Shown here piece by piece: positions 3,001-63,449 of a stretch of DNA of 64,000 nt (the stretch's first letter is position 1; every line of letters starts with the position of its first letter). The notes below the pieces were generated by a model. That model was not told the origin of the DNA. It did no database searches and worked only from the letters and a program-made list of their open reading frames with translations. A program made the translations under genes and the position numbers. Origin of the DNA: Macrostomum lignano (taxonomy: Eukaryota); assembly GCA_002269645.1 (NCBI GenBank), contig NIVC01000130.1:682001-746000 (forward strand). Reading direction: 5' to 3'.

Positions 3001-5054
3001 TCCTCATCCTCCCAATGTTCAGGTGGGGTTATCCACATCCTCCCAATGTTCAGGTGGGGTTATCCACATCCTCCAAATGTTCAGGTGGGGGTTATCCACA
3101 TCCTCCTAATGTTCAGGTGGAGGGTATCCGCATCCAATGTTCAGGTTAAGGTTATCCACATCCTCCTAATGTTCAGGTGGGGGTTATCCTCATCCTCCCA
3201 ATGTTCAGGTGGGGTTATCCACATCCTCCCAATGTTCAGGTGGGGTTATCCACATCCTCCAAATGTTCAGGTGGGGTTATCCACATCCTCCAAATGTTCA
3301 GGTGGGGGTTATCCACATCCTCCTAATGTTCAGGTGGAGGTTATCCACATCCTCCAAATGTTCAGGTGGGGTTATCCACATCCTTCAAATGTTCAGGTGG
3401 GGGTTATCCACATCCTCCTAATGTTCAGGTGGAGGTTATCCACATCCAATGTTCAGGTTAAGGTTATCCTCATCCTCCCAATGTTCAGGTGGGGTTATCC
3501 ACATCCTCCCAATGTTCAGGTGGGGTTATCCACATCCTCCAAATGTTCAGGTGGGGGTTATCCACATCCTCCTAATGTTCAGGTGGAGGGTATCCACATC
3601 CAATGTTCAGGTTAAGGTTATCCTCATCCTCCCAATGTTCAGGTGGGGTTATCCACATCCTCCCAATGTTCAGGTGGGGTTATCCACATCCTCCAAATGT
3701 TCAGGTGGGGGTTATCCACATCCTCCTAATGTTCAGGTGGAGGGTATCCGCATCCAATGTTCAGGTTAAGGTTATCCACATCCTCCTAATGTTCAGGTGG
3801 GGGTTATCCTCATCCTCCCAATGTTCAGGTGGGGTTATCCACATCCTCCCAATGTTCAGGTGGGGTTATCCACATCCTCCAAATGTTCAGGTGGGGTTAT
3901 CCACATCCTCCAAATGTTCAGGTGGAGGGTATCCGCATCCTTTCAGTCTTGAGGGGTGGTTATCTACATTCTTACCAGCCTTAGGAGAAAAGTTATCCAC
4001 ATCCTCCCAACGCTCATTAATCCCATAATCCCCATAAATCGCTGCAGGCGGCAGCGCCAATTCGCAGTCCAGCAGTCAGGGGGGCGGCAGCGTCGGTGGC
4101 GGCGGTCTGCAATCGCTGCTCAGACTGAGCCAGGCGGGCCTGACGCCGCAGCACCAGTTGCTTCTGCAGCAGCAACAACAGCAGCAGCAGCAGACTGCAT
4201 CGTCGCTTCTGTCAGGCGGTGACGGCATCGGTGGATCATCAGTCGAGCCGCTTCTGCAGCAGCGCTCCGGTGGCATCCGCAGTCTGGCCGCCTCAGCTGC
4301 TGCTGCAGCCAACACCCAGCAGCAGCAACTGTTGCTTCAACAGCAGCAGCAGCAAGCGGCGGCTTCGTCAGGCAACTACTATGGCCAATCCACTGATCAG
4401 GCCCACCCAGCCGACCTGAAGCAGCTGTCATCGCAGGCTATTCTGGCTCGCCAACAACAGCAGCAGCCAGTTGTCTCCGTAGCCGGTTATCATCCGTCTT
4501 CGTACCTGACCTCCGCAGCTGCCCAGCAGCAGCAGCAGCAGCAGCAACAGGCTCAGCAACATCTGCAGACAATCCGACTCGACCCAATGTCCATAGCCGC
4601 CCCGTTACGGTCCCAGACTCCGCCTAGGCTGCAGGAGGCGCTCAGCAAGTTGGAGAACGGCTTCAAGAAGCTGCCGCACGCCGCCGATTCTGAACGATTT
4701 CGGCAGCACACAACGCATAATCCTACTCAGGTGCCGCCCTATTATCCGCAGTCGCCGCCGCCGGGCATGGACACCGAGGAGTTCTACGCCCGGCTAGACG
4801 TGCACACTCTGTTCTTCATCTTCTACTACTTCGAGGGCACCAAAGCCCAGTACTTGGCCGCTAAAACATTGAAGAAAATGTCCTGGCGATTCCACACCAA
4901 ATATCTGATGTGGTTCCAACGCCACGAGGAGCCCAAAACCATCACGGACGATTTCGAGAAGGGCACCTACGTTTATTACGACTACGAGAAGGCGGTGCAA
5001 AAGCGACGCGACTTCACGTTCGAGTACAAGTACCTTGAGGACAAGGATCTGTGA
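20..5054 (+). CDS. CNOT3: CCR4-NOT transcription complex subunit 3 (5'-partial). Exons 20-115, 201-314, 638-752, 1970-2575, 4048-5054
   Basis: Exons 1-3 translate to [32 protein letters not shown]|[38 protein letters not shown]|[37 protein letters not shown] (Not3 N-terminal domain). The last exon encodes the NOT-box ([52 protein letters not shown]...[10 protein letters not shown]). All introns are GT-AG with matching phases (0,0,1,1); exon sum 1938 nt is divisible by 3. Confidence 0.95.
890..1925. repeat. Intronic minisatellite, 21/23-bp unit (ACTGACACAATCTCACGACTTTC)
   Basis: Directly visible tandem array inside CNOT3 intron 753-1969, with degenerate copies leading into it. Confidence 0.95.
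2612..3940 (+). repeat. Intronic minisatellite, ~31-32-bp unit (GGTTATCCACATCCTCCCAATGTTCAGGTGGG)
   Basis: Tandem array in CNOT3 intron 2576-4047; source of the spurious ORFs at 2586-4028. Confidence 0.95.
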
Positions 5055-19562: not shown

Positions 19563-19689
19563 AAAACTCAACTGGATCTCTGTGATTAAATAATTTTGCT
19601 GTCATATAATTTTATAGACTTTGTAGTTTTTATAGACTCCTTTCGAAGAATCCTAGGGGTCTGTTGTAACTTACCATTAACAGACTCTG

Positions 19690-20400
19690 CGGAGAGCGGA
19701 ATCGCTAGATAAAATGAGGTGGTGGGTTGAGGGAGGCTTGTTGCTGTGCAGTAATGAGCTCTGCGGTGAACGGAATCGCTAGATAAAATGAGGTGGTGGG
19801 TAGAGGTAGGCTTGTGTATGTACACTGATGAACTCTGCGGAGTCGGAATCGCTTGATAAAATGGGGTGGTGGGTAGAGGTAGGCTTGTGTATGTACACTG
19901 ATGAACTCTGCGGAGTGGGAATCGCTGGATAAAATGAGGTGGTGGGTAGAGGTAGGCTTGTGTATGTACACTGATGAACTCTGCGGAGTCGGAATCGCTA
20001 GATAAAATGAGGTGGTGGGTAGAGGTAGGCTTGTGTATGTACACTGATGAACTCTGCGGAGTCGGAATCGCTAGATAAAATGAGGTGGTGGGTAGAGGTA
20101 GGCTTGTGTATGTACACTGATGAACTCTGCGGAGTGGGAATCGCTGGATAAAATGAGGTGGTGGATAGAGGTAGGCTTGTGTATGTACACTGATGAACTC
20201 TGCGGAGTGGGAATCGCTGGATAAAATGAGGTGGTGGATAGAGGTAGGCTTGTGTATGTACACTGATGAACTCTGCGGAGTCGGAATCGCTGGATAAAAT
20301 GAGGTGGTGGGTAGAGGTAGGCTTGTGTATGTACACTGATGAACTCTGCGGAGTGGGAATCGCTGGATAAAATGGGGTGGTGAGTAGAGGGAGGCTTGTT
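19690..20400. repeat. 73-bp minisatellite, ~10 units
   Basis: GATAAAATGAGGTGGTGGGTAGAGGTAGGCTTGTGTATGTACACTGATGAACTCTGCGGAGTCGGAATCGCTA recurs every 73 bp (e.g. 19782, 19855). Confidence 0.93.
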
Positions 20401-21465: not shown

Positions 21466-22476
21466 CTAAGTTGGATATGTAGAAACAAACTTCCGAAAGA
21501 GGCCCAAGTAGAGAATTTCTTGTTGCTTTGTCTCTTCAACACAGTTGGTCTTCTCAAATTCATGCAAATCCTGGTCCAACTCCGTCAGTGCAGCTTCTTC
21601 CTGGCCAGGTCCATCAATCTCCCATAACAATTCGAAGAGTCTGTTGCTTGCCTCGTCGAGATAATCGTCATCGTCATCACCAAACACCCCGTTGCTCATC
21701 AACCAGCGCCATCACTCCATGCCAGTCCAAAGTCTGGTCTATCTCCGTAGCCGTAAGACCCGAAATCATTTCATCTCGAAATTTAGAGAGGTCAATAAGT
21801 CTAGCGGTTCGAGACATTTTCGGCTCCTGTCTTTCTTGTCTAGTCTCGTCTTTCTGGTCCAACTCAAACTTTAAGTCACCGCTCTTATAATCTCTTAGTT
21901 TGTGGTAAAACTCCAGCTTCGTGTGAAAACCCTCGATGTCTTTGGCTATCCATATATGTCTATGGCTATCCATCTATGTCTATGGCTATCCATCTATGTC
22001 TATGGCTATCCATCTATGTCTATGGCTATCCATCTATGTCTATGGCTATCCATCTATGTCTATGGCTATCCATCTATGTCTATGGCTATCCATCTATGTC
22101 TATGGCTATCCATCTATGTCTATGGCTATCCATCTATGTCTATGGCTATCCATCTATGTCTATGGCTATCCATCTATGTCTATGGCTATCCATCTATGTC
22201 TATGGCTATCCATCTATGTCTATGGCTATCCATCTATGTCTATGGCTATCCATCTATGTCTATGGCTATCCATCTATGTCTATGGCTATCCATCTATGTC
22301 TATGGCTATCCATCTATGTCTATGGCTATCCATCTATGTCTATGGCTATCCATCTATGTCTATGGCTATCCATCTATGTCTATGGCTATCCATCTATTTC
22401 TATGGCTATCCATCTATGTCTATGGCTATCCATCTATGTCTATGGCTAAAATCAGGAGATCGAAGGCTTCGCCCAT
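21466..22476 (-). pseudogene. Acidic ~169-aa protein-like ORF broken by a 500-bp satellite and one frameshift
   Basis: Removing 21948-22447 restores MGEAFDLLILAKDIEGFHTKLEFYHKLRD...; a 1-nt shift in the G run near 21687-21690 continues into VFGDDDDDYLDEASNRLFELLWEID...STYPT*. Minus-strand AATAAA at 21347-21352. Confidence 0.55.
21948..22447. repeat. 20-bp minisatellite (TATGGCTATCCATCTATGTC) x25
   Basis: Nearly perfect tandem array. Confidence 0.97.
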
Positions 22477-23127
22477 AAATCTAGGAATCTACCGATTGGT
22501 TCCTTCATGCGTAAATAGGCTAGTCCTGGCAAGAGTGCGCGTCTAAGCGATAAATCTACCATTGTCTGCCTTTAAAACCATGGACAAAATCATTAACACA
22601 CAAACTGACTAAAGGTTTCTGCTTCATATTACCTGGCGCACAATAGAGTACATGTACACCTGACAGAGCTTGGGTTGGGCATGGTAACTCAGCTGGGGTG
22701 ATTGAGGGCAAATTCTTTGCACTACAGACCTGACACGCAGGCTTTCTCTCCGTTGACTGTCAGAATTGAATGGCTGTGTTTAAATTGTGGTATTGTACGC
22801 TCAACTCAAAGCAGCCGGTGAGACTGAGAGTACAATGCTACCTAACATTGTATTGGGACGATCGGTTGAATCTATAAATGTAAAAACTGTCCGGGAATTA
22901 GCTTTGTGATTGCTACAACTCTGCCTACCAACCCTAGCTATCCAGAACTATAGGTACCATCAATGCAGAGTGCAATGTTGACATACATCTACGAGAAACT
23001 CCTGGCAAATTGTCAAATTCATCTAAACCGGAAGGGCCTTCTACATGCACTGCTGCTGGAGGTACAATAGCTGCATTACTGCTATTGTACCTCTAGTTTG
23101 GAGACTACAATTAACTCGAGCAGCATG

Positions 23128-23300
23128 AGATGCACTCTCCAGAGATTCGTTTGCCGCATGCGGCTCTGTCAAACCAGACGCCTGCGGAGCTTATGGCACC
23201 TGTCAGCAATCAGGACAATCCACCTCGTCGAGTTTGAGCCGCTGGTACCGTCGAATCTATACCTAAACTCTGAGATCTATTGTATCCGGCATCACATCCC
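23128..23300 (+). pseudogene. Degenerate partial duplicate of PHM exon 1
   Basis: Aligns by eye to ~24570-24770 (GAGATTCG.TTGCCGCA.GCGGCTCTGTC; GTCAGCAATCAGG.CAATC.AC.TCGTCGAG.T.GAGCCGCTGGT), with deletions and frameshifts. Confidence 0.75.
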
Positions 23301-23592
23301 GCCCTCCGCAGGGCCCTGCTTCTACTCAACCTCAAGGACATCAGGACGGTAACCATGGCCCTCTCGGATCATGGCTGTTTTGCCAGGCATCGCTACCTCA
23401 TTGAGCATTGAGAATTCTGGCTCTCCTGCGTTGAAAATGCGGAATGTCTTGCCTTTACTCAGGAGAGTCACCTACTTCGGCCCAAAACCGGACCTTCCGA
23501 CGTTTTTAAGCCCGAGAATCTCTGCCAGCTCGTCCGCAACCAAAGGGCTACCAGGCGAGTGACCATCCACCTCCTGGACTCTCCGGAGGGGG

Positions 23593-23775
23593 CTTAGCTG
23601 CAGGGCTGTCCCGGAGGGGACACAGCGGGAAGGCGCGGGCGCCCATTCCGCTAACCGGAGGGGGCAGTCAGAGCGCCGCGCGGGCACCGGCACCACCGGA
23701 TCTCCCTCCCTGCGCGACACCGCAGCACTAGCCTCGACGCCTTCCCGCTGTATCCGGAACCCCCTGCAGCTGAGT
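23593..23775. other. GC-rich element with imperfect ~40-bp terminal inverted repeats (MITE-like or hairpin)
   Basis: TAGCTGCAGGG...GACACAGCGGGAAGGCG pairs with CGCCTTCCCGCTGTATC...CCCTGCAGCTG. No TSD seen. Confidence 0.45.
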
Positions 23776-24380: not shown

Positions 24381-25745
24381 ATGTCTGTAAAAGACAGCTC
24401 TATGGAGCGAACAAACATCGAGGTCAGCAAGATGAAGTCCATCTGCCGAAGACTATTTTGCATGCGCTTCTCGTCCAGTGGTCGACTGCAGTTCAACAGG
24501 ATCAGTCTGTTGGCTCTGGTTGCGTATCTTCTGCTTGTGCAACTACTCTTGGCGCACCTTTGGCGAAGCACTTATAAGATACACTCCATGGAGATTCGCT
24601 TGCCGCAGGCGGCTCTGTCGAGCCAGACGCCCGGAGCTTACTTGTGCACCGCTGTCAGCCTCCGAGACCCGAGGAACGCGTCAGCAATCAGGCCAATCTA
24701 CATCGTCGAGTTCGAGCCGCTGGTGCCACCGAATCCAACAAACTCCGAGATCCATGTGCATCACATGCTACTCGCCGAATGCAACGAGCTACCAGAAGGT
24801 GTCGGCGTCAATGGGCACGGCTGGTGGAACTGTGGTCTGGGACACCACAAAGACAGCGCCGTATCCGGGAACAGCAGCAAAGAGATGTGCTCGGTACGGC
24901 AGCGGTACCTGTTCGCCTATTCGAACAGTGCGGAAGCGTTCCAGCTACCGCGGAAGGTCGCGATGCCCGTGGGAGACTCTCGTTTCTACGGCGGAGCGCA
25001 CCTGGTGCTGCAGGTACGAAGATCTACATATTTTGTGTCTCATAATAAGTACAAGCAAATGTCTCGTACTGACAACTAATTATGCGTAAATGACAACCAG
25101 GTGCACTACTCTAGTGGAAACCAACGGTTGCACGTCCATCCAAATCAGCATCACTCCCCTGCAGTTGGAGACCGCAGGCCCGGTCTCCGTCTCCGCTACC
25201 TGAATGAGACGGGAAATCATTACCGAGTGGCCGGAGTCCACCTGTCTTCAACGTCGATCAGACCCGACGTCCGCTCTCGACACACCACCGGCTGTGAGTA
25301 CACTGGCGAACTGCCGATAAGACCATTTGGTCTTCGGGTGCACACTCACTCGCTGGGCAGGCTGGTCTCCGTGTACAGAGTGCGTCGGCCCCGGCTGCCC
25401 CAGGACCCGATGGTTTGGCACCTCATCGGCCAGGCCGACCCGCGCCAACCGCAGGCCTACTATGCCGCAAATGCGAGCAGCGACCTGACAGTGAAGCCAG
25501 GCGATCTCATTGCGACAGCGTGCGCCACTACAGGCGGCAGAGGTGGCAGGTCCGCCCCAGTTGAGACGTGCAACGCCTGGCTCATTTTCTGGTTTGAGCA
25601 GTTGGACGCATTGTCGAAAGTGACTGGGCCGGATGGCCACGAGGGCAAAGTGGATCTGCAACAAGACTGCATCAGTAGTGGCTCGGCGTTGAGCCTCTGG
25701 TCTGATGCGCCGAAATGGGTTGAGAAGCAGGCTTTTTTGGTGTAA
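24381..25745 (+). CDS. PHM: Monofunctional peptidylglycine alpha-hydroxylating monooxygenase (PHM)-like protein, 425 aa. Exons 24381-25013, 25101-25745
   Basis: Motifs AYLC, HVHHMLLAEC, LVLQ|VHY, LRVHTHSLGRLVSVYRVR, LIGQADPRQPQAYY, VKPGDLIATAC, ETCN correspond to the copper type II ascorbate-dependent monooxygenase domains. 87-bp phase-0 GT-AG intron; N-terminal hydrophobic anchor; no PAL domain. Confidence 0.88.
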
Positions 25746-26149: not shown

Positions 26150-27420
26150 GCTGTCAGATTCCATATAATGTTTGTAGTGACTTGTCAGATCCCATATGAT
26201 GTCTGTAGTAATTTTCAGATCTCTGAATATGATGTCCGTAGTGACTGTCAAATCTTATATGATGTTTGTAGTGACTGTCAGATCTCATATGATAGTGATT
26301 TTCAGTTCTCATATGATGTCCGTGGTGACAGTGAAATCCCATTGGATGTCTGTAGTGACCGTCAGATCCCATATGATGTCTGTAGTGATTTTCAGATCCC
26401 ATAGAATGTCTGTAGTGACTGTCAGATCCCATAGAATGTCTGTAGTGACTGTCAGATCCCATAGAATGTCTGTAGTGACCGTCAGATCCCATATGATGTC
26501 TGTAGTGATTTTCAGATCCCATAGAATGTCTGTAGTGACTGTCAAATCCCATAGAATGTCTGTAGTGACCGTCAGATCCCATATGATGTCTGTAGTGATT
26601 TTCAGATCCCATAGAATGTCTGTAGTGACTGTCAAATCCCATAGAATGTCTGTAGTGACTGTCAGTTTTCATATGATGTCCGTAGTGACAGTGAAATCCC
26701 ATTGGATGTCTGTAGTGACCGTCAGATCCCATATGATGTCTGTAGTGATTTTCAGATCCCATAGAATGTCTGTAGTGACTTTCAAATCCCATAGAATGTC
26801 TGTAGTGACTGTCAAATCCCATAGAATGTCTGTAGTGACTGTCAGATCCCACAGAATGTCTGTAGTGACCGTCAGATCCCATATGATGTCTGTAGTGATT
26901 TTCAGATCCCATAGAATGTCTGTAGTGACTGTCAAATCCCATAGAATGTCTGTAGTGTCTGTCAGATCCCATAGAATGTCTGTAGTGACTGTCAGATCCC
27001 ATAGAATGTCTGTAGTGACTGTCAGATCCCATAGAATGTCTGTAGTGACTGTCAGATCCCATAGAATGTCTGTAGTGACCGTCAGATCCCATATGATGTC
27101 TGTAGTGATTTTCAGATCCCATAGAATGTCTGTAGTGACTGTCAAATCCCATAGAATGTCTGTAGTGTCTGTCAGATCCCATAGAATGTCTGTAGTGACT
27201 GTCAGATCCCATAGAATGTCTGTAGTGACCGTCAGATCCCATATGATGTCTGTAGTGATTTTCAGATCCCATAGAATGTCTGTAGTGACTGTCAAATCCC
27301 ATAGAATGTCTGTAGTGACTGTCAGATCCCATAGAATGTCTGTAGTGACTGTCAGATCCCATAGAATGTCTGTAGTGACCGTCAGATCCCATATGATGTC
27401 TGTAGTGATTTTCAGATCCC
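26150..27420. repeat. 30-bp minisatellite (GATCCCATAGAATGTCTGTAGTGACTGTCA) with higher-order variant pattern
   Basis: About 42 units; source of ~410-aa ORFs on both strands. Confidence 0.95.
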
Positions 27421-28760
27421 CATAGTCACTACGCTGATTGACCAACTGTGAAGTCTCAATTGTGCTGAGCGATTGCTCAGACGCATCATGCTCTCTACAT
27501 GTTAGCTCTTACTCACCATTATGGTAACTAACTATTAGAATTACGTACTGTAATTATAATTTCCCTTGCGTTTTCTTTCTCTAACCTACACTATGCAACT
27601 GTGTGCTCCAGGCAGTGCTAGAATGTCTAATAGTGTGCGTGTGCATCGGATTTCCTTTCCCTGTATCATACCGGCCTATGAAATGCTGAGACCAACGACT
27701 TCACCTGGGCGAGTGTACATTCGATATTTGTAGACTATAGAGACCACTGAGTTCTAGAGTTAACTAGCTATCTGGATTGGAAAGCTAGAGCAACCTCGTG
27801 TATAAGAGAACTTTTTTAAACGTGGTGGAAGTGGAAGTAGTGGCATAGCCATAGCCTCAGGGATCATAGAGGTCATATGGGGGTCATGACGCGCCCCCAA
27901 ATAGCTAACGATGAAAATTTTGAATCTTAATTAATTTTATAATCGGCGCTATGGGCGCTGATTTAGCGCCACTGACTAGATGTTTCTCACACCTCTCAAA
28001 AAATGTTACGCTCCTAAAGAAGCTTTAAAGATTGAAATACAAGTAGCCGTGCCCGTGATCGATATCTTTCATTTTTTAGTCACTCAATGAACTTTTTACG
28101 AACTTCCCGCAAACAAGCGGTACATGTAGAGGACAATTGACAAGGCATTAATAGCGTGCCTATTGATAAGTTCCGCTGAACCTGCGGGGTAAGTCCATGT
28201 CCTGTCCCGCCTGTTATTCTTCCTTTGGCGAGGCGGTGCGTTTAACAACTGTCAATGGGGTTGTTAACTTGTTTCCTTTCTAATTCTAGTCTAGATTTCG
28301 TTAAGTCTAGAACTCCGTGACTCACCGCCCCGCCCCAAACCCCCCTTTACCACCCACCACCCCAAGCACCCACCACCCCAAGTACCCACCACCCCGAACA
28401 CCCACCACCCCATACCCTCGTGCCGCACATGACCAACTCTGCCCTCTCCTCGCTTGCGCGTAGAAAATAGCTTGCTCCTGCAGATGCTCTAGCTTCTATG
28501 TAGAATAGAACGAGAACCCAGCCAGCGCCCACTCCCTTCCCCATTGCCCTCTAGCTGTATATATTAACTGTACATTGTACAATTAATTCCTGCAAACTCA
28601 CTTTTTAGTTAAGCAAGAATAAATATTCTCCCACGCTGGGCTTTTACAGTCCTTAACTGTTTACTGTGCTCCAGCCCTAAACAAAAAGCGACAAGCTAAG
28701 ATAAGATAAGAGATAATTAGAGCCACTTGCAACTCCCGTAACACAAATTAGCTTCCCCAA

Positions 28761-33715: not shown

Positions 33716-35974
33716 CTTTTGAATCTCTCTGGCCCAGAGAAACCCTGGGAAGGGCGCGCAGCTTTCACAGTTTTTTGCTGTCATCAGCGAGATAAAGGAA
33801 GTTTTCTGATGTTTTGTAGCACCAAATATCTAACCTGTGCACTCAGAGATGCACTCAAAAGTTTATCGAGAAAAAATTGAAAAGCATCGTTGAAGAGCGG
33901 CAACGTAACGTAAAACTACCCTGATGCAGAGAAATTTCTAGTCGATCATTATTAACTGCTCTGCAGGATTCTGTAACTCATCAACTGCTAAAAAGGAAGT
34001 TAGACAAGAAGCAATACAATTACTACTTTTAGTGATACGTAACGCTTCATTTTGACGTTTTATTTTTCCTGCGATCTCATGAGCAATGGTGTATACGATG
34101 TTACGATTTTCGTATTTTTTAGCTGAAAAATGTTATTATCATCTGCATGGTACCACAGTCACAGTCGTGCCGAAAACTGCATGGTTCGATTCCTACTAGC
34201 GCGAACTAAAATAGCCACATGTAATCTGAGGCTTGTCCAAGTCCAAGAGGGCGGACCTGTTACTGATTATTTTGTTATAGTCTGTCAGCTATTAGTGTTG
34301 TAACCGTCTTTGATTAACGTATTGATGAAGCTAAAATATAACATGATGCATGACGAAAATTCTAAAAAGTTTCCTATCTTCTAGTTCAAAATTGTATTTA
34401 TAAATATCTGCTCTTTCACTAAATTAAATTCATTGTTAGCACATACGATTATTTTATTTGGCTGTTTCTCATTTATTAAACCCACTGTCTGTTGAGCAGA
34501 TAGCTAGTGCGAGTTCTTAGGCCACAAGTTAGTTGCTTGTTTCTATATAAACTGTTCTTTAAACAAAAATCAAAGTATAGCTACATAAATTATTTTATCG
34601 AGTGGAACCATTTTTCATGATTAATTTATCAAAAATTAACTGTATCGGATTTAGTATTTTAAATATTTTTGTTGTTTTCATTCAAAATTCATTTAGCTAA
34701 AGTTATTCAAATTCAACTTTGAACTCAAAATAGAAATGTCCTACATTTTATAATTTGTTACTTGTTAGTAAAAAACTAAAAAATTTCCCAAAACTGATTG
34801 ACGCGAAACTAGCTTATATTATTGATGAATCTAAATATGTTTATTAATAAACATACCGGTAAATAAGGATTTGGCATGATGCAGCTTTAGATATAGTGGT
34901 TATTCGTACTGTACCCTTTTAAATCCAGTAAATCCAGAATTAAAAATGAAGTCAATTTTTTCATTTTGAAGCTTCAAAAAATTATCTTTAGACAGCCGAC
35001 TTCAATAACTAAAACTTTAATTTTAACAAAATCATTTTTAGAATGAGGCACAATGACAACTGAAACCAGTGATTGGATAGCTAATAAAACAGAGTATATT
35101 GTCTTTTGGCAAAATATAGGCAAGGCAAATGAAATATAAAAATATAACTATAGAAAAAGTTAATAATACCAGCAGCAACTAATTTTTTAAATGATTTTAA
35201 AAATCAGACAGTACATCTGATTCTTGTGCATGGTAAATAATATTTACTATTAACTGTTACGGTTTGACAATGAATATTTTATTTGATTAAACAAACAGGC
35301 AAAATAATCGTTACAAATTACTGAATTTAGCTACAATGATAAGTTATAGTTCTATGTATATAGTATAGAAAACTTTTTTCATTGGACTCGTATTTGGATA
35401 AAAAAAGGCAAATGAAATTAACAAAAAATTCACCATTGAAAAAGCGATCTATGAGCAAACTGTTTTCGGATACAAATGATGAAGAGAAGACATGAACACG
35501 GCAAAACCAGCCAAATGTACGCTAAATATAATGGCAGTAGGAAAGGTGTACAAGCAGCGTATTTTGTTGTACAATGTAATGTCAAATAAAAACTATAATA
35601 AATACGCTCGTAATGTAGTGGAAATTTCTGAATAAAAATTAGTAATAAACACTATTAAGCATTGAAACCTTACCCCACTCATGCTGTATGATCACGAAAA
35701 GTTCAGAGAGAAATGGAAATCTACAAGCAGTGTAAGAACTTGTTTAATTTTTTTAAAATAAAAATTTTCAAAAGTTTTCAGCAGCAAGGATATAAAAACA
35801 TACACACTATAATAATTTCAGTAAATGTACAGCGGATAATAACCAATAGTAAAATTCTAAACAGTAAAACTAAAATATTAAATATGAGAAAACAACCTAA
35901 AATACCCATATTAAGTGTGAATAAACAAGATTTTTTGGCTTTGAAATCGTTCAGTTGTCCGTTATACTCGTATT

Positions 35975-36634
35975 TTAGTCTCTAAACGTAATCTCTTCGA
36001 CGCACTTCTTAGCTCTTTCTCGACAGGCCTCGGGCAGGTAGTCGAATTCCGTAATCATTTTAACACCGTTCAATAGCTCCTCGTCGCGTTTCCGTTTGAG
36101 CAGCAGGTCGGCCAGTCTAATCAAATAAACGGACGCCTCCTCATCTGGCACTCCGTCACCCATGGTGGCCATCATTCCTATAGCCAGGCCGACCGCTTCC
36201 ATCATGCTAGGCCGATCCCAGGGCCTCGAACGCAGGCTAACATTGCCCATTAGAACGTATGCACAGTCTAGCAGGCGGCGGAACATCACAGGCCGATTCC
36301 AGCCATCTTGGATCAACTCTTCTAGGCCGTCGATCACCTGCATGCGCGAGAGAAAGGACGGGATGTGAGGGATGAGTTTAAGGGGAGGGGGTGGGGGGCG
36401 GGCCATGTACATTTAGGGACGAGATTTAGCGTGTGTGTGTACATTTAGGGACGAGATTGAGTGAGTGAGTGAGTGAGCGAGTGAGTGAGTGAGTGAGTGA
36501 GTGAGTGAGTGAGTGAGTGAGTGAGTGAGTGAGTGAGTGAGTGAGCGAGTGAGTGAGTGAGTGAGTGAGTGAGTGAGTGAGTGAGTGAGTGAGTGAGTGA
36601 GTGAGTGAGTGAGTGAGTGAGTGAGTGACCGATT

Positions 36635-39600: not shown

Positions 39601-42061
39601 AATCAGTACCTGAAACTATGGAAGAATCAGGCCCTGAAGCTATGAAAATCTAGTTGAAACTAATAAAGCAGTGTAGACCCTAAAAAAGAGAATCCAATTA
39701 AAGCATTAAATCGTAACCATACACGATTAAGTCCAACTAACCATTTCGCCGATCGCGTTGCACTCGCTTAGTATCTCGTCGGTTTGCGGCAAATCCATCA
39801 GCAGCATAGACATGCAGCCAAACATGCGGCCCATGGCCAACGTACCCTCGGGCGACACCTCGTCTAACAGGTTCTCAATGGCCGTGCGACAAGCCTCGAC
39901 TAATCCAGGCTGACGCATTAAAGCCTCTCGAATGCAATAGTGCTGGCATAGACTGAAATCAATTTAGCTTTACTATTAATGACCTGACAACACTCCTTTG
40001 ACATCTTGAGTGCTAAGCCACCTATCTGCCTCTCACTCCTAAACCACCCCGAAGCATTTTCATGTTTTTACAATTCAACTCTTTCGAGAAGGTCAATTTC
40101 CAGATTCTATAGACCCGCAAAGGTTAAACAATCGAATTTGACTATGAGAGAAGTTTTGAGCTAATAAAAAAACGATCCTGTTTCAGAGGTTGGATTTCAT
40201 TTGCATTTGCTGTGCAAAACATTAATAAGCTACTATTCCAGAAAAACGAATACTTCTTCGCGTCTACCGGTAGATTTCAACCCTAAATCATTCTCTCTCA
40301 GTCCAACAATCGCTACGGTAGCTATACTCACCGGTAAGCAGCGTTGCAAAACTCCCCAAACGATTTCGGATGCTCACTTCCGTTAACAAGACCCTCTCGA
40401 ATGGCTTTGGCAATGTAGTCAATTTTCTTAGAGTCCTGATCAATCACGCGAACGTAGAACCTTGGACACAGCGCAATGGTGGCCACGAGTTTGTAGGCCT
40501 CGGCACGGGCCAGATCGGATTCGCTGCCAGTTCTTAGCATGAGATGCATATTGGCTCGAATTTTGTTGCTACCAAATATGCCGTAGTCGCTATCGAACAA
40601 TGCAGTCTCAGTCAAGTCGTACTTGTTGCACATCAGCTTGCAAACGTTCGGATCGGAGAGCACACCGATAGCGTATTGAATGCCTTCAAGGCTGACATCT
40701 TCCAGCATACGCTTCTCGGTGCACACCATTTCGAATACGTTGTCAATGACGCCGCGGACTTGCAACGAGCGCACGGCGTTGTCTTTGAAGTCGCGAGAGG
40801 CGTGCTTGCACAGCGTGTAGGCAGATTTTAACACCTGGGATTGGTTGGCATGTAGGTTGTTAGTGGAACTAGTATCTTCTGTTGCCTGTTACTAGTGCAT
40901 TATGTTCTCAGATTGACTGAAATAATGCACTGTACGAACTTTTTCTGAGGAAAAAACGTAATATTGAAACTAAAAAAATGTAAATTTCCACGGCTTTTCC
41001 ACGCCTTAATAATTTAGTGAGTGAGCCATTGTCGGCTTTTTAGGGCCTGGTGCACTTTGGGCCTGGCCGCTGGACTTTGGCGTGCCCCTTCCCTGCCGTG
41101 CACCCTGCCCCGTGCTCTGTGCTGGTTGGCTGCGGCCAGCCCTGCTGTGGCACGAGGGCTGCGCCCTGCCCCGGGCGGGGTTTTGATTGGCTGGCTCTGA
41201 GCGCTGTTCTGCGCAGCTTAGTCTGTGGGACAGGCTGTTCCCCAACCCCTCCTCTCAAGGCCCAAGGTCTGTTTTTTTTAATCATTTATTGTCTTCTTTG
41301 CGCCTTTTTTACTCTGTTATTGTTAGTCTTTTGCACCAATTTGCTACTACAAGTTCCAAATATACTAATCTCTATCCATATACTAAAAATGGTCTGTCGG
41401 TAGGTAGGTATGTGGGTATGTGATCGATTTCAGAAAAAACTGCTTAACCGATTTTCTTCGAACTTGTTTACTCTACAAATATACGGGTGTTATTTATTCA
41501 GCTTCTGGTAAGCACTTTGAAAAAAAATTATACAACTCCCGAAGCATGGGACTTTAGTCTAACAAAAAAACATTTTAACATAACTTTGTGCAACTAATCG
41601 AACTTGAATCTTGATACTGAAAGAGTGAACTAGGATAAAAAACTTTGAGTCCAGTCATGTGGACAAAGTTTCAAGTCAATTGACTTGTTCGATTTCAAGT
41701 TGAGTACTTAGATTGTACTCCTAGTAGTTAAGACGAAAATCAATGATTTAAAACAATATTGGCTGTAAAAACTAACCTTCAACTCGTCTGGGTACATATT
41801 ATCAACAGTTTTGGCCATTACTGCACTAATCTTTGGATTTCGAATGAGAACATTGAAGCCATTGTTTTTCTTGAAGCTGAAGCGCATTTCATCATCGCTA
41901 AGTGAATTTGCAAAAGCAACAAGTCCATCAGCATAAAATTGTAATTCTTGATCTGGAGGCGAAAGGCTGTCCATTGTGGCTTTGATTACATCACCAAACT
42001 TGTCTTCCCTTGGTGGTGGCGGCGGTGGCCCCTGCTGCTGCTGCTCTGTCTCTTCAGCCAT
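35975..42061 (-). CDS. 719-aa alpha-helical (ARM/HEAT-like) protein with an internal duplication, unknown family. Exons 42061-41777, 40834-40332, 39952-39742, 38725-38557, 38055-37865, 37403-36966, 36337-35975
   Basis: All six introns are GT-AG with matching phases (0,2,0,1,0,0); exon sum is 2160 nt with no internal stop. The two halves align (FSFKKNNGFNVLIRN vs TKFKEKGGFDMLIRH; VRSLQVRGVIDNVFEM vs IRYIQMPNIIDISVEM; YKLVATIALCPRF vs YRLFRQLVQCPKL). Confidence 0.85.
36460..36700. repeat. Compound (GAGT)n + (GT)n microsatellite
   Basis: Directly visible in the last intron of the helical-repeat gene. Confidence 0.95.
38128..38535. repeat. 43-47-bp G-rich minisatellite (GTTTGCTGGTCTGGGCAGTGTGTACATTGGGGGTAGGGTGGGT)
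   Basis: Tandem array in intron 4; shares GTGTACATTGGGGG with short repeats at ~36690-36760. Confidence 0.92.
38925..39650. repeat. 24/25-bp minisatellite (GAATCAGGCCCTGAAACTATGGAA)
   Basis: Tandem array in intron 3; source of the MEESGPET ORF. Confidence 0.95.
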
Positions 42062-44464
42062 TTCGAGCTTATAACTAAGATAAGCTGCAAGTCACAAACT
42101 GAAATAAATTTTGAATGAATATTTTATTGATCAGCATAACTGTAAACTGAATTTTTAGTTAGAATGATGAAAAACATAATTACATAGTGTGATAGTGCAC
42201 TGCTGCCAACTGATTAACATAATGTAGACTATAGAACTTTGCCTAAGTGCCTCTCCCACTGTTATGTTTGTGACCCAAATAGATGCTCAAGTTGAGAAGC
42301 CAGACTGCTACTTGAGGCTTGGCAAGTAAACTTTCTTTTCTTGCTTGCTTGGCTATAGCCTAGGCAAATGGCTACATTGTCATTAGTCATTTATATTATT
42401 AAATTAGAAACTAAAAAAATGTATTCTCCAAAATAAAAAGCAATTTTAACCATTAAGGTTATTATACAGTACAAATATATAATATTTGCTTTTCCACACC
42501 ATGATATTATTTTATACTGTATATATTATAGTTATACATTATCTAATTTAAGTGTAGATCAAAAGAATACATCATAAGATAATATCATATCCTTAGAAAC
42601 TCAAAATTTTCCAAATAAGATAAATTAGCAAAATGCCTTTTCTACCTATATTATAGATTATTTGGTAAAAGAAATTAAAGATTTATACTAGATGTAGATA
42701 TATTTTTATAAATGTAATAAAATATCCTACTGAAAATACTTCATTTACACATCAATATACACATATCAATAATTGATTAAGTAAGCCGAAAGAAAAAAAC
42801 AGACAGCCACTTTAGAGCAAGATAAATCAAAAGGTTTTAAGTTTTAACTTCGCAATTCTAACAAGGAACCATATTCACAAATCATTGTGATTAGCATGTT
42901 TTAGCGAAAGTTTCCCGAATTCTTGTTTAATAAATCATAAGACTTACAAAAGCGTATTTCAATAGACTATCAAGAAGATTTTAACTGTAAATTAATTATA
43001 ATTATGGAATTATTTATAACTAAAAAGTAAAACGTACGACCAAGGGCAACGAGCGTTTTTTAATTCTATGGCAAAACAGGCGTCTGAATGCCCGAAGAGA
43101 AAGTATCAAGGCGATAACGAGAATAATAGGTAGATAAATAGGTAGATTAATTTCTCCTAGTATCGACTAAGTCACTCAGGTGTAAAGTGTAAAGCCTTTG
43201 GGCAATACTTATTCTTTAAAAGCGATTTACAAAATCAGTGGTAAAATGTCAACTTTTTCGAAAGCGAAATTTATACAAGGTACTAAACTTTAGCTTCTGT
43301 AATAATTAGGCAGTAAATTTAAAAAAAGATCTTGAATAAAAATTGCAAATGCATTATTTTACTTTTTTAATTCATTAAATTCTATGTAAATAATTAGTAA
43401 ACTTTGTTAATGTAAGCTGAAGCCGTCAAAATTTATCTCAATGTTTGTACTTGAATTGATATGCTTATATGAATAGTGGGCATAACTTTTGTGATCTCTA
43501 GCTTAGTTTTTATTTCTCTCCCTATTTTTTTCTATGTGTATAAACATCTGTCCTATTTGCAGTTGGCTTTTCTGCATGCTGTATAACAGGAGCTAGTAAG
43601 GCAGGAATAAAGGGTCTCCTCCAGTGAAGTCCAGGGCTGCAGAAGCTCGATGGAAAAAAACTTGGCGGGAAAAAACTGGCTTGAGAATCTAGCGCGGAGG
43701 GTTTACCGAGGAAACCCTCCTGCGGGTAACCCTCCTGCGGGAAACCCTCCTGCGGGGAAAACTCTGGAGGAAAATCAAGCGGTTGATGGCAAGTTAAAGT
43801 GCTTTTAATGCTGAGCTATGGCCTCTGAGACTTTACTCGTAATATTAAGTTGACACATTTTAGCCAGATGATTGTTTGTGTTTTTCAAAATACAGTGAAG
43901 TACATGTAATATTAGTATACACCGGTAGAGAGCTTAACAGCGTAAAAGAACCCCCCCCCTGTGCCGAACTAGCTCCTTTCTTTGTCTTTGCGCCAGCACC
44001 AAGGGGACGCCATTATAAGTGTGTGTGCATTTCGTAGACTAGACTAGCTACTCGCATTAGCATAAATAAACTGGTCGCGGAATGATTAATTTTCTTTAAT
44101 TATCTCTGCATGGTTCAGATTTTGATTACAATTTTCACATATAACAAGCCAACAAGCTGTTTGAATTTAACATATGCTATACATGAATGCATGAAACCGG
44201 GTGTAAACAGTGATTTTCTGACCGGAAATGTTTAGACCACTTGATGGCGTTTAACTTATTTTGCCCCTTGGCACAAGTTAGTAGCATTGCAATACGTGAA
44301 ACCTCAGCTTGTCAGGCGCAATTAACATGACATATTCGCTTCCTCTATTAAAGTGCCGCTGTGTGTATAAAGAACGATTTACGACTATAAGCTGGTCTAC
44401 ATACATGTATATGTTCAATATGGTGCGGTTGGACTTTTGTCGGCTATTTTGGTGTACATACTCT

Positions 44465-61100: not shown

Positions 61101-63449
61101 ATATTTTGACCAATAGGGTATCTCACGAATGCCTGAAATGTATTTATGATTTAGCAATGTTCACTTTTATCGTAGATTTTTGCGCGTGCCAATTTCAGCT
61201 ACATCCCGCCGCTGGCACGAATTGCCAAATTTCAACTTACGCCTTCGCTTCTTCTCCATCCTTCTGGCTCGCTTGGCAGCCCTTCGCGCCTTCTCTTCTT
61301 TCTCCTGGCTTGCCCGGCATTTGTGAAAGTTTTCAACAACAACGCCGACAAACATGTTAAGCACGAAGAAGCCTACTAATAGTAGGAACGAGATAAAATA
61401 CAGCAGCAGCCACTCGTTGTTGTTCTCCTTCGGCTGCTGATTTTCGCCCACAGCGTCCAGTCCCGTGTACATAATTTGAACCCAGCCGTCTCTTGATGAC
61501 AAAACAAACAGCGCCATAAGTGCCTGGCCAAGGTTGTCAAAGTTGTACTTGTGCCTTTCCCAGGTGTTGCGCCTGTCGGCCAAACAGTTGGTTTTGTTGG
61601 TGACGCCTGTCAAATCGGGTCCTTTGCAGTAGAAAAACTTTCCTTTAAAAAGTTGTACACCAAGAATGCCAAAAATGATGAAGAATGTGCAACAGATTAA
61701 CACGATGTTGCCTATGGGTCTAAGCGAAGACAGCAGAGTTTGCACGACCAATTTGAGCCCTGGTGCCCTGCTAATCACGCGCAAAGGTCGTAAAGTTCGT
61801 AACAGGCGGAAAACCCGTAAAATTCCGAAAATCCGACTAGTACTACCAAACAGTAGTACCACGAGGATATCAATCAGTGAAATGAACACGAGAGCTCCGT
61901 CCATTATGTTCCAACCGCTTCGCAAATAGGAATGACGACTTATAATGAGACCGTGGGATACTAGCTTAATTAGCATCTCGACCGTAAATATGACCGTAAA
62001 TATATTGTTGCTGAGACTGAGGAATTGACGCTCCTGAAATTGTTTGTGCAATTACATCGTCACATATGTAACAAATAAAAGTACATTATTACAACAAAGT
62101 ACAAAACAACTTACTGTACTATTCTGTGGAATCGAAGGTCTTTCCATAGCCAGAGTGATGCAGTTCAGAGCGATGAAAAATAGTACTGTGTAGTCGAACC
62201 ATCGCTGCTGCGTTATCTTATTGCACAATAAGCGGAATCTGGCGGACATGTGGGTGATTATTAATAAATATGCGAACTTAACCCATCAGTAATAATCTAA
62301 ACTACCTTGATGAGCTTCGTTCACTTCTCCACCTACGAGCGTACATTACCGTTTCTTAATCGGTAATTTAAATATCCATACAGTGAAAAATAGTTTCTAC
62401 AATTTCTTATTCAAGATTTCCTGATTGCAAAGATAGACAGTAGATTTACCTGTTAGTTGGACTGAACAGATACAATGCGTAGTCTTCGCGATCTTTGAAA
62501 CAGCCAGTGGTCGGTACAACATACTCGCTGAGCCATTTCAGCTGCTGCAAAATTGGTAGATGAGAGCTTCTATTGTAGAAATCGTTGGAACGGCGGAAGC
62601 ACTTTTCTGACAGCTACGATACAATACAGTAGACATTTGGAGGCGGCTATCACATGCTCGAAATCCTTCATAAGATCAAAAATTCACTTGATTAAGTATT
62701 CAAGTCGTCAAATTGTTTTGGTTTTTTTTCGACGCTGTAAAAAGTGAACCTATGATGTCCCACTTTGCCTGTATGCCTTGTCTATGTAGCTAGTGCTTTG
62801 CAAGCGGAGATTGTCACTAAGTAACCTCCGCTGCCATAGACAATAAAATTAACGCCTTGAGCCAGAGTGAGGTTGGTTGAGCACTTTCTTCTACCATAGA
62901 CAAAACGTGTCCCGCGAATACAGGGAGCGGAGAACACTCATAATCTCCGCAAATCTAGTCAATATTCTCCGCTCCTTGCATTCGTGAGATACATTTCAAT
63001 AACCAACTGAAATTTGGAGAATTTCTATGCAGACAGACATTCTCCTCGTTTCAGTAGGTTATTATACATGTTTCGAGCTAGTGATATTCTTGTACTTGTG
63101 AAAGCAACCACAGACACTTCTCCCATATCCTCTTACCAAATCGTCCTCCGTACTAGCGTTGCTGTCACGCTCCTCTTCGGCTCCGGATTCTCTTTCGACT
63201 GGACGTCCGGCAGAGCCTTCGCATGCCCGCCGGCTGCCCAGCTGCGATCGGTTACTGCTGAAACTTCCAGCGCCGTCTTCGTCGTCCTTGTTATTGTCCA
63301 AGTTGCGCATTCCCAATTCGTCGGCTTGATTTTCAATTGGCGACGAGCGGAGAAACGGGCCGCGACCGTTGCTGCCGTCAGACTGATGGCGAGCCACGAG
63401 TTGGCCGTTGCAACCACTGGAAGGTTCATCGGTGGACTTTTCATTTTTA
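58162..63449 (-). CDS. Cav3: Voltage-gated T-type calcium channel alpha-1 (Cav3), 5'-partial: II-III linker through C-terminus. Exons 63449-63137, 62544-62450, 62238-62115, 62033-61241, 61132-60981, 60891-60782, 60692-60562, 60244-60095, 59956-59679, 59167-59048, 58362-58162
   Basis: Domain III S4 [43 protein letters not shown]; pore SSRDGW (D); III-IV linker EKKRR; domain IV S4 [32 protein letters not shown]; pore [12 protein letters not shown] (D); S6 [21 protein letters not shown]. Asp in DIII and DIV is diagnostic of T-type. All introns are GT-AG and phase-consistent. The last exon is less certain. Confidence 0.96.
58520..58805. repeat. Degenerate 10-bp repeat (CATCCTGTGT)
   Basis: Tandem array in the last Cav3 intron. 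Confidence 0.85.
59295..59625 (-). mobile_element. tRNA-derived SINE copy in a Cav3 intron
   Basis: Co-linear with 53305-53663 over ~300 bp; head GGCGCTCTTACGTGCCAGCGGTCCGGGCTCGATTCC. Confidence 0.85.

Follow-up and report, generated by a model that had tools for sequence, protein, structure and literature searches.

A 64,000-nucleotide stretch of the Macrostomum lignano genome (contig NIVC01000130.1, positions 682,001 to 746,000; hereafter the window) carries a two-exon gene for a PHM-like copper monooxygenase in which the methionine ligand of the copper site CuM is replaced by threonine. The five copper-binding histidines are in place and the family fold is predicted for the product. A natural protein with a His-His-Thr CuM site that keeps all five His and the fold is unusual, and it is real. 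We favour, at about even chances, an interpretation of this protein as a lineage-specific, highly diverged and catalytically impaired PHM paralogue, that is, a pseudoenzyme.

PHM-type architecture and the altered CuM strand

The gene encodes 425 amino acids (coordinates of all features are given in Table 1). An earlier interpretation made from the letters of the window (the sequence-only reading) had described an otherwise intact open reading frame (ORF). This needs correction, as frame 1 runs into a TAA codon and is open only after an intron of 87 nucleotides has been spliced out, which joins ...GAHLVLQ to VHYSSG... in the 425-residue product. UniProt A0A1I8HU36 matches this product residue for residue. 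A second M. lignano protein, PAA47899.1 (BOX15_Mlig031046g2), is 98% identical and has equal length and exon structure. It is encoded at a second locus (NIVC01004296.1), within a duplicated block that is ∼95–99% identical to the window over > 14 kb. The two genes differ at 11 exonic and two intronic positions; the sole indel between them (2 nt) is intronic and the exons have none. The UniProt and GenBank matches, together with the position of this indel, establish that the window is M. lignano DNA and that the two-exon model is sound. UniProt names the protein automatically 'Peptidylglycine monooxygenase', which, judged by the residues described below, over-states what the sequence supports.

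Both halves of the protein are recognized by Pfam (Cu2_monooxygen, PF01082, 3e-13, 50.4 bits with a cut-off of 30; Cu2_monoox_C, PF03712, 5e-14, 52.5 bits with a cut-off of 23), each above the curated gathering score, and neither DOMON nor PAL was detected in the Pfam scan. The protein belongs to the copper type II ascorbate-dependent monooxygenase superfamily (PHM/DBH/TBM/MOXD). A phmmer search of PDB sequences matched rat PHM/PAM chains only (4e-18). AlphaFold2, run on a 40-sequence alignment, gave a model with a mean predicted local distance difference test score (pLDDT) of 80.7 and a predicted template modelling score (pTM) of 0.80; a two-domain β-sandwich like the PHM catalytic core is thus confidently predicted. 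In a Foldseek search with this model the top 29 matches are all rat PHM (E ∼1e-21 to 1e-18; template modelling (TM) scores normalized to the target of 0.67–0.79), the best of them reaching TM 0.72–0.79 at E ∼1e-21, and human DBH comes after them. The architecture is of the PHM type rather than the DBH/MOXD type, since DOMON is lacking, the PDB sequence matches are all PHM/PAM and Foldseek places DBH after PHM.

Residue equivalences were taken from the HMMER pairwise alignment to rat PHM and from a MAFFT alignment with 38 diverse PHMs, and the two agree. In the phmmer alignment VHHMLL, LQVHY and RVHTH are matched, and 'vetcnaw' sits under 'demcnly'. What the sequence-only reading had said of the active site holds in both alignments: the five copper His (HH, VHY and HTH) are present, VETCNAW with its ACG codon stands in the place of DEMCNLY, and Met314 and Tyr318 of the rat enzyme have become Thr and Trp. 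Its eight structural Cys are also confirmed. The luminal part contains Cys 89, 134, 151, 170, 276, 352, 368 and 401, which are exactly the invariant or near-invariant Cys columns of the family. Rat PHM has a fifth pair, Cys47–Cys186, which is without a conserved counterpart in the aligned invertebrate PHMs.

The changes extend beyond the methionine. Thr362, a further conserved residue just upstream of the motif, is altered to Ser, and the loop that precedes VETCNAW is five columns shorter than the MAFFT consensus, as had been noticed before. Tyr occupies the Tyr318 column in 108 of 114 aligned domains. Of the substrate-binding trio Arg240/Asn316/Tyr318 the first two are present (Arg290 and Asn369), and the third is Trp371. 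A misalignment that conceals a Met was considered and rejected, because phmmer and the 40-sequence MAFFT alignment both place Thr at the Met314 column. Neither gives CuM another Met. The only Met of the C-terminal domain, M315, lies within a 7-residue hairpin insertion, and hairpin insertions without Met are also found in canonical PHMs (MAFFT). As far as the alignments can tell, the protein is without the Met ligand, one of the features that define a catalytically competent PHM (EC 1.14.17.3), and Trp at the Tyr318 column makes it equivocal in a second.

At the N-terminus, residues 41–61 form the sole hydrophobic segment, with 40 residues before it; the 21 residues immediately ahead of it include five K/R and no D/E. 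There are four N-glycosylation sequons in the catalytic part. The segment is probably a type II signal anchor (N-in, with a luminal catalytic domain). The sequence-only reading had called it an uncleaved anchor. The single segment, its distance from the start, the preceding basic residues and the sequons fit an N-in anchor, and cleavage as a signal sequence is a conceivable alternative. Met1, Met8, Met18 and Met28 are candidate start codons, and trans-splicing is common in M. lignano (PMC5730564).

The linker between the two domains carries a His-rich insertion, LHVHPNQHH, which follows closely on the CuH ligand His213. An unrelated PHM from a Logan contig (P0018) has a different His-rich insertion at the same linker site, which hints at a possible recurrent metal-capturing loop in the PHM linker.

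A second locus, distant relatives and the pattern of constraint

The Thr codon might not be what is translated. An assembly or sequencing error, a strain polymorphism or C-to-U RNA editing that restores AUG could each conceal a methionine, and ACG is a single transition away from ATG. We consider this very improbable. The second locus, which comes from another assembly record and differs at 11 other exonic positions, carries the same ACG and the same VETCNAW, and two UniProt entries likewise have Thr. ACG is not a sequencing error, because a diverged second locus has the same codon. Six more conserved residues of the CuM motif and its strand are altered (Asp312, Phe/Leu317, Tyr318, Met320, Tyr321 and Thr362 to Ser), so that one restored Met would not make a canonical site. 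We know of no description of C-to-U mRNA editing in flatworms.

The protein has no close relatives. When 1.84 billion cluster representatives were searched exhaustively with HMMER, 284 matched, and the best of these outside M. lignano is Nematostella PAM-A (37% identity, 146 bits). Owenia, an aphid-type PHM, Desmophyllum and Calliactis follow, with Sycon, Patella and a Tegillarca cluster lower down. No match exceeds 37% identity and no orthologue outside M. lignano was found in this search, nor is a specific sister group identifiable among these relatives. A word-index search with the full length and with the core returned only the M. lignano cluster and four distant PHMs.

We tallied the CuM triad over the 113 homologous domains that align at all three positions. 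It is His-His-Met in 107 of these, and His-His-Thr occurs only in the M. lignano protein. Among the exceptions, P0102 (H-H-V) was rejected as a natural non-Met relative, being a frameshifted or mis-spliced prediction. P0124, P0129 and P0084 were rejected as comparable cases, as they have lost His ligands too (see below). In the searchable library no paper was found that connects Macrostomum to the PHM/DBH family, that reports a CuM site with His-His-Thr in nature or that deals with natural Met-less PHM paralogues.

Precursors of amidated neuropeptides are generally reported from flatworms, among them M. lignano, and a canonical PHM is therefore expected in this animal. None was located among the matches listed (30 representatives named). 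The named sources of these 30 are only cnidarian, annelid, mollusc, sponge, nematode, hemichordate and crinoid. P0004, examined as a possible flatworm PHM, is aphid-like and was rejected.

Conservation was measured over the 57 columns that are ≥ 85% conserved in canonical PHMs. The M. lignano protein keeps 42 of them, compared with a median of 55 and a minimum of 41 for canonical members, so that it is not canonical in its other residues either. The losses are concentrated in one place: within residues 351–374 (the Met strand) eight of the 13 conserved columns are lost, versus six of 43 elsewhere (Fisher p = 0.0015, for a partition chosen post hoc). This pattern suggests that the CuM strand has long been released from constraint, or that the constraint on it has been redirected, with the rest of the fold constrained. 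Purifying selection over most of the gene's past is also implied, since an open frame of 425 codons, canonical splice sites, all conserved Cys and a confidently predicted fold have survived divergence to ≤ 37% identity from every relative.

Present-day selection was estimated by the Nei–Gojobori method from the window gene and the copy at the second locus, the only two copies available. There are eight non-synonymous and three synonymous differences (pN 0.83%, pS 0.97%), and the resulting ratio (dN/dS) of 0.85 is indistinguishable both from 1 and from strong constraint. The sequence-only reading had held that a ratio near 1, in a gene that is not expressed, would count against its proposal. 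The value formally approaches this, yet 11 substitutions carry no power. Between the two loci the exons diverge by 0.86%, the intron and upstream region by 1.1% and the other flanks by 1.25–3.1%.

The evidence for expression is indirect. The GenBank annotation that includes PAA47899.1 was built on RNA-seq, as a genome-guided transcriptome (StringTie/TACO plus de novo assembly), and not ab initio (PMC5730564), which implies reads for the two-exon transcript at one or more near-identical loci. Neither the full-text library nor the supplements of PMC5816591 and PMC12896417 contain the gene id.

Proposed function of a Met-less CuM site

Thr is a poor Cu(I) ligand. Substitution of the CuM methionine has been studied directly in two enzymes of the superfamily. 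In the PHM variant M314I copper is still bound at CuM, with water in place of the thioether, and CuH is perturbed; M-site and H-site ligand variants such as M314H have ≤ ∼5% activity (PMC12164859). Early studies of PHM M314I/H/D/C found undetectable activity, and in tyramine β-monooxygenase (TBM) M471H/D are inactive and only M471C has measurable, self-inactivating turnover (PMC2988203). From this mutagenesis and the ligand properties of Thr, loss or severe reduction of the classical activity is the default expectation for the M. lignano protein.

We infer its membrane topology, copper binding, loss of activity and a role as binder or regulator along the following lines. The protein would span the membrane once (N-in) and expose its two-domain PHM fold, disulfide-bonded and glycosylatable, to the secretory lumen. 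Copper would most likely be bound at CuH by three His, and more weakly at a CuM site made of two His and water or a hydroxyl. A C-terminal carboxylate is probably still recognized via Arg290 and Asn369. Efficient peptidylglycine hydroxylation is probably absent, because the thioether is missing and the whole CuM strand is remodelled. Its role, if any, may be that of a non-catalytic binder of copper or of Gly-extended peptides, or of a modulator. The sequence-only reading had offered a pseudoenzyme or new copper chemistry. The Met314 and Tyr318 substitutions, the intact five His and the published mutagenesis agree with that pair of options, and the data cannot choose between the two.

Several observations weigh against the pseudoenzyme interpretation. 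No canonical PHM was located elsewhere in M. lignano among the matches listed, and if there were none the window protein would have to be active. With no orthologue available, the Met-to-Thr change cannot be dated. Present-day purifying selection on the gene is not shown by the two-copy data: beside the dN/dS of 0.85, pN (0.83%) is only marginally below the pooled non-coding divergence of 1.7% (p = 0.05). Nor does retention of the five His prove a constrained copper site, an argument that we considered and dropped; at ∼74% retention of conserved columns, five out of five is expected by chance with a probability of ∼0.22 (0.74^5) and is not significant alone. There is no direct sign of expression of the window copy, and no transcript-like contig in the collection encodes the exact protein. 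Finally, the turnover of TBM M471C means that loss of the Met is no absolute bar to activity (PMC2988203).

The same selection data would fit a decaying duplicate, one of many redundant copies, whose function is lost, in which Met-to-Thr is one lesion among others and whose frame is open merely for lack of time to drift further. The M. lignano assembly Mlig_3_7 indeed contains 180 Mb of blocks duplicated at ≥ 95% identity (PMC5730564). A degenerate exon-1 fragment 1.2 kb upstream of the gene records local duplication and decay, exon divergence (0.86%) is close to that of the intron and upstream region (1.1%), the 42 conserved positions are at the bottom of the canonical range, and there is no orthologue elsewhere. 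However, a gene that has drifted freely to ≤ 37% identity is hard to reconcile with an intact 425-codon frame, splice sites, eight Cys, five His, Arg240, Asn316 and predicted fold. The losses are clustered in one strand, and the indel that separates the copies fell in the intron and left the exons free. We regard decay as unlikely, though it deserves serious consideration.

The clustering of the changes in the CuM strand, which may be co-ordinated, could instead reflect a copper monooxygenase or oxidase that is active, its CuM being independent of Met (two His plus water, the Thr hydroxyl or a loop ligand) and a pocket remodelled by Trp371, Ala370, Val365 and the shortened loop for a new substrate. 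The five His, Gln170, Arg240, Glu313 and Asn316 are all kept, potential new ligands are present in the His-rich linker insertion (residues 221–229) and in M315, and TBM M471C demonstrates that some Met-free turnover is possible. Against this, all tested Met substitutions in PHM and TBM, even His, abolish or nearly abolish activity, and Thr would co-ordinate Cu(I) poorly. M315 makes an unconvincing ligand: the third strand begins with it, two strands plus three to four residues separate it from His292 (∼14–16 Å, as estimated from the hairpin register), and canonical PHMs have comparable Met-less insertions. We judge an active enzyme to be improbable. A little more doubtful still is the specific proposal of a Met-less active member of the PHM/DBH family that uses two His and a non-thioether ligand and whose new substrate belongs to the secretory pathway of the flatworm. 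In an extreme version the window protein could conceivably be the animal's only amidating enzyme. Activity would mean that the 'essential' CuM methionine is dispensable in nature, and if M. lignano has no canonical PHM this reading would become compelling.

What the CuM methionine does in PHM, DBH and TBM is still debated, with electronic tuning, fluxional dynamics and conformational gating under discussion (PMC2988203, PMC12164859). A natural protein that lacks the Met and retains the His is a test case for it, as every engineered replacement has crippled the enzyme. If inactive, the M. lignano protein would be a clean case of a pseudoenzyme among the copper monooxygenases, and might bind copper or Gly-extended peptides in the lumen; if active, it would overturn the view of the thioether as indispensable. 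M. lignano is tractable by transgenesis and RNA interference, so the question can be put to the test. This importance is potential rather than demonstrated, for a single lineage-specific paralogue.

Gene surroundings and comparison with known PHM proteins

Table 1. Features of the PHM-like gene, its product and the nearby exon-1 fragment (window positions; residue numbers in the feature column are those of the M. lignano protein).
Feature	Position	Strand	Description
PHM-like gene	24381-25745	+	two exons; 425-residue protein (ORF search and translation)
Exon 1	24381..25013	+	residues 1-211: N-terminal tail and hydrophobic anchor, then most of the N-terminal (CuH) domain with His127/His128
Hydrophobic segment, residues 41-61 (ISLLALVAYLLLVQLLLAHLW)	24501..24563	+	Kyte-Doolittle maximum 2.3 over 19 residues; AlphaFold2 helix 40-61
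His127-His128	24759..24764	+	rat His107/His108, CuH ligands; kept
Gln211			rat Gln170; kept
Intron, 87 nt, GT..AG	25014..25100	+	GT at 25014, AG at 25099-25100; in-frame TAA 25077-25079
Exon 2	25101..25745	+	residues 212-425 and TAA stop: His213 (rat His172), linker, C-terminal (CuM) domain
His213			rat His172, CuH ligand; kept
His-rich insertion LHVHPNQHH, residues 221-229	25128..25154	+	interdomain linker; inserted relative to most aligned PHMs; pLDDT 51-71
Arg290-Val-His292-Thr-His294 (RVHTH)	25335..25349	+	rat Arg240 (binds substrate carboxylate) and His242/His244 (CuM His); kept
Gln329			rat Gln272; kept
VETCNAW, residues 365-371	25560..25580	+	replaces family motif DEMCN[FL]Y (rat DEMCNLY)
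Val365			rat Asp312; changed
Glu366			rat Glu313; kept
Thr367 (codon ACG)	25566-25568	+	rat Met314, CuM thioether ligand; changed
Cys368			rat Cys315; kept
Asn369			rat Asn316; kept
Ala370			rat Leu/Phe317; changed
Trp371			rat Tyr318; changed
Ile373			rat Met320; changed
Phe374			rat Tyr321; changed
Degenerate, frame-disrupted partial exon-1 copy	23125..23280	+	70% identical in nucleotides to 24574-24755; 31 nt deleted (tblastn and blastn)

The degenerate exon-1 copy lies ∼1.2 kb upstream of the gene, within a block (22310–23593) that aligns at 96% to the second locus. About 400 bp downstream of the gene there is a 30-bp minisatellite (26151–27425; 42.5 copies, 86% match) that produces spurious ORFs of > 400 residues on both strands; the array is seemingly much shorter at the second locus. 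Two tandem arrays are found upstream, at 19684–20399 (73 bp, 9.8 copies, 95% match) and at 21936–22448 (20 bp, 25.6 copies, 99% match), and are consistent with the high tandem-repeat content reported for M. lignano. Elsewhere in the window are an exon with a NOT2/NOT3/NOT5 C-terminal domain (4158–5054, + strand, 8e-34; CNOT2/3-like), an exon for an ion-transport-family channel segment (61167–62051, − strand, 2e-60) and, by homology with the second locus, a PLAC8-domain gene at ∼18.4–19.6 kb. No functional link was found between the PHM-like gene and these neighbours (the CNOT2/3-like exon, the ion-channel exon, the PLAC8 gene and the satellites). AT-rich stretches occur at 34001–36000 (GC fraction 0.29) and 42001–44000 (0.34), compared with a window average of ∼0.46.

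The rat and human PHM core (PAM; 1PHM, 1OPM, 1SDW) shares with the M. lignano protein the two-domain fold, the five His, Gln170, Arg240, Glu313 and Asn316, the four disulfide-forming Cys pairs and an implied luminal location. The differences at an identity of ∼24–37% are Met314 to Thr, Tyr318 to Trp, Asp312 to Val and Leu/Phe317 to Ala, a pre-motif loop that is five residues shorter, and three insertions (the 7-residue hairpin, the His-rich linker and six residues before HH). Where the rat and human proteins have a short signal peptide, the M. lignano protein has a signal-anchor-like segment, and it is without PAL. The monofunctional invertebrate PHMs (cnidarian Calliactis and Nematostella, mollusc Patella, insect PHM) are its nearest sequence relatives and, like it, consist of PHM only, without DOMON or PAL. 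All of them have DEMCN[FL]Y, and they are ≤ 37% identical to it.

The engineered Met-site mutants (PHM M314I, PDB 1YI9, and M314H; TBM M471H/D/C) come closest, among experimental systems, to the natural Thr variant, as in both the thioether is absent and both CuM His are present. They are, however, single changes in a canonical enzyme, whereas the strand of the M. lignano protein is also remodelled, and no Thr variant is among those described in PMC12164859 and PMC2988203.

Natural PHM domains with a defective CuM site differ in another way. P0124, in a PAM-like protein on an ENA contig, has QR for HH, Tyr at His172, Glu at His242 and Ile at Met314 and keeps only His244 of the six ligands; its degenerate PHM domain precedes a PAL-like region that is apparently complete. 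P0129 (Anneissia japonica 'PAM B-like', XP_033126806.1) has Tyr/Asn at His242/His244 and Glu at Met314, and keeps His172. P0084 (Glandiceps talaboti 'putative PHM 1', XP_077988554.1) also has Thr at Met314, with Arg at His242; HH and His244 are kept and the segment around His172 is lacking. Judging by these sequences, dead PHM domains seem to have arisen several times. The scaffold of the Met strand is retained in them, as CNFY in P0124 and P0084 and as CRFY in P0129. The M. lignano protein is the opposite of all three: its His are kept and its Met strand is remodelled.

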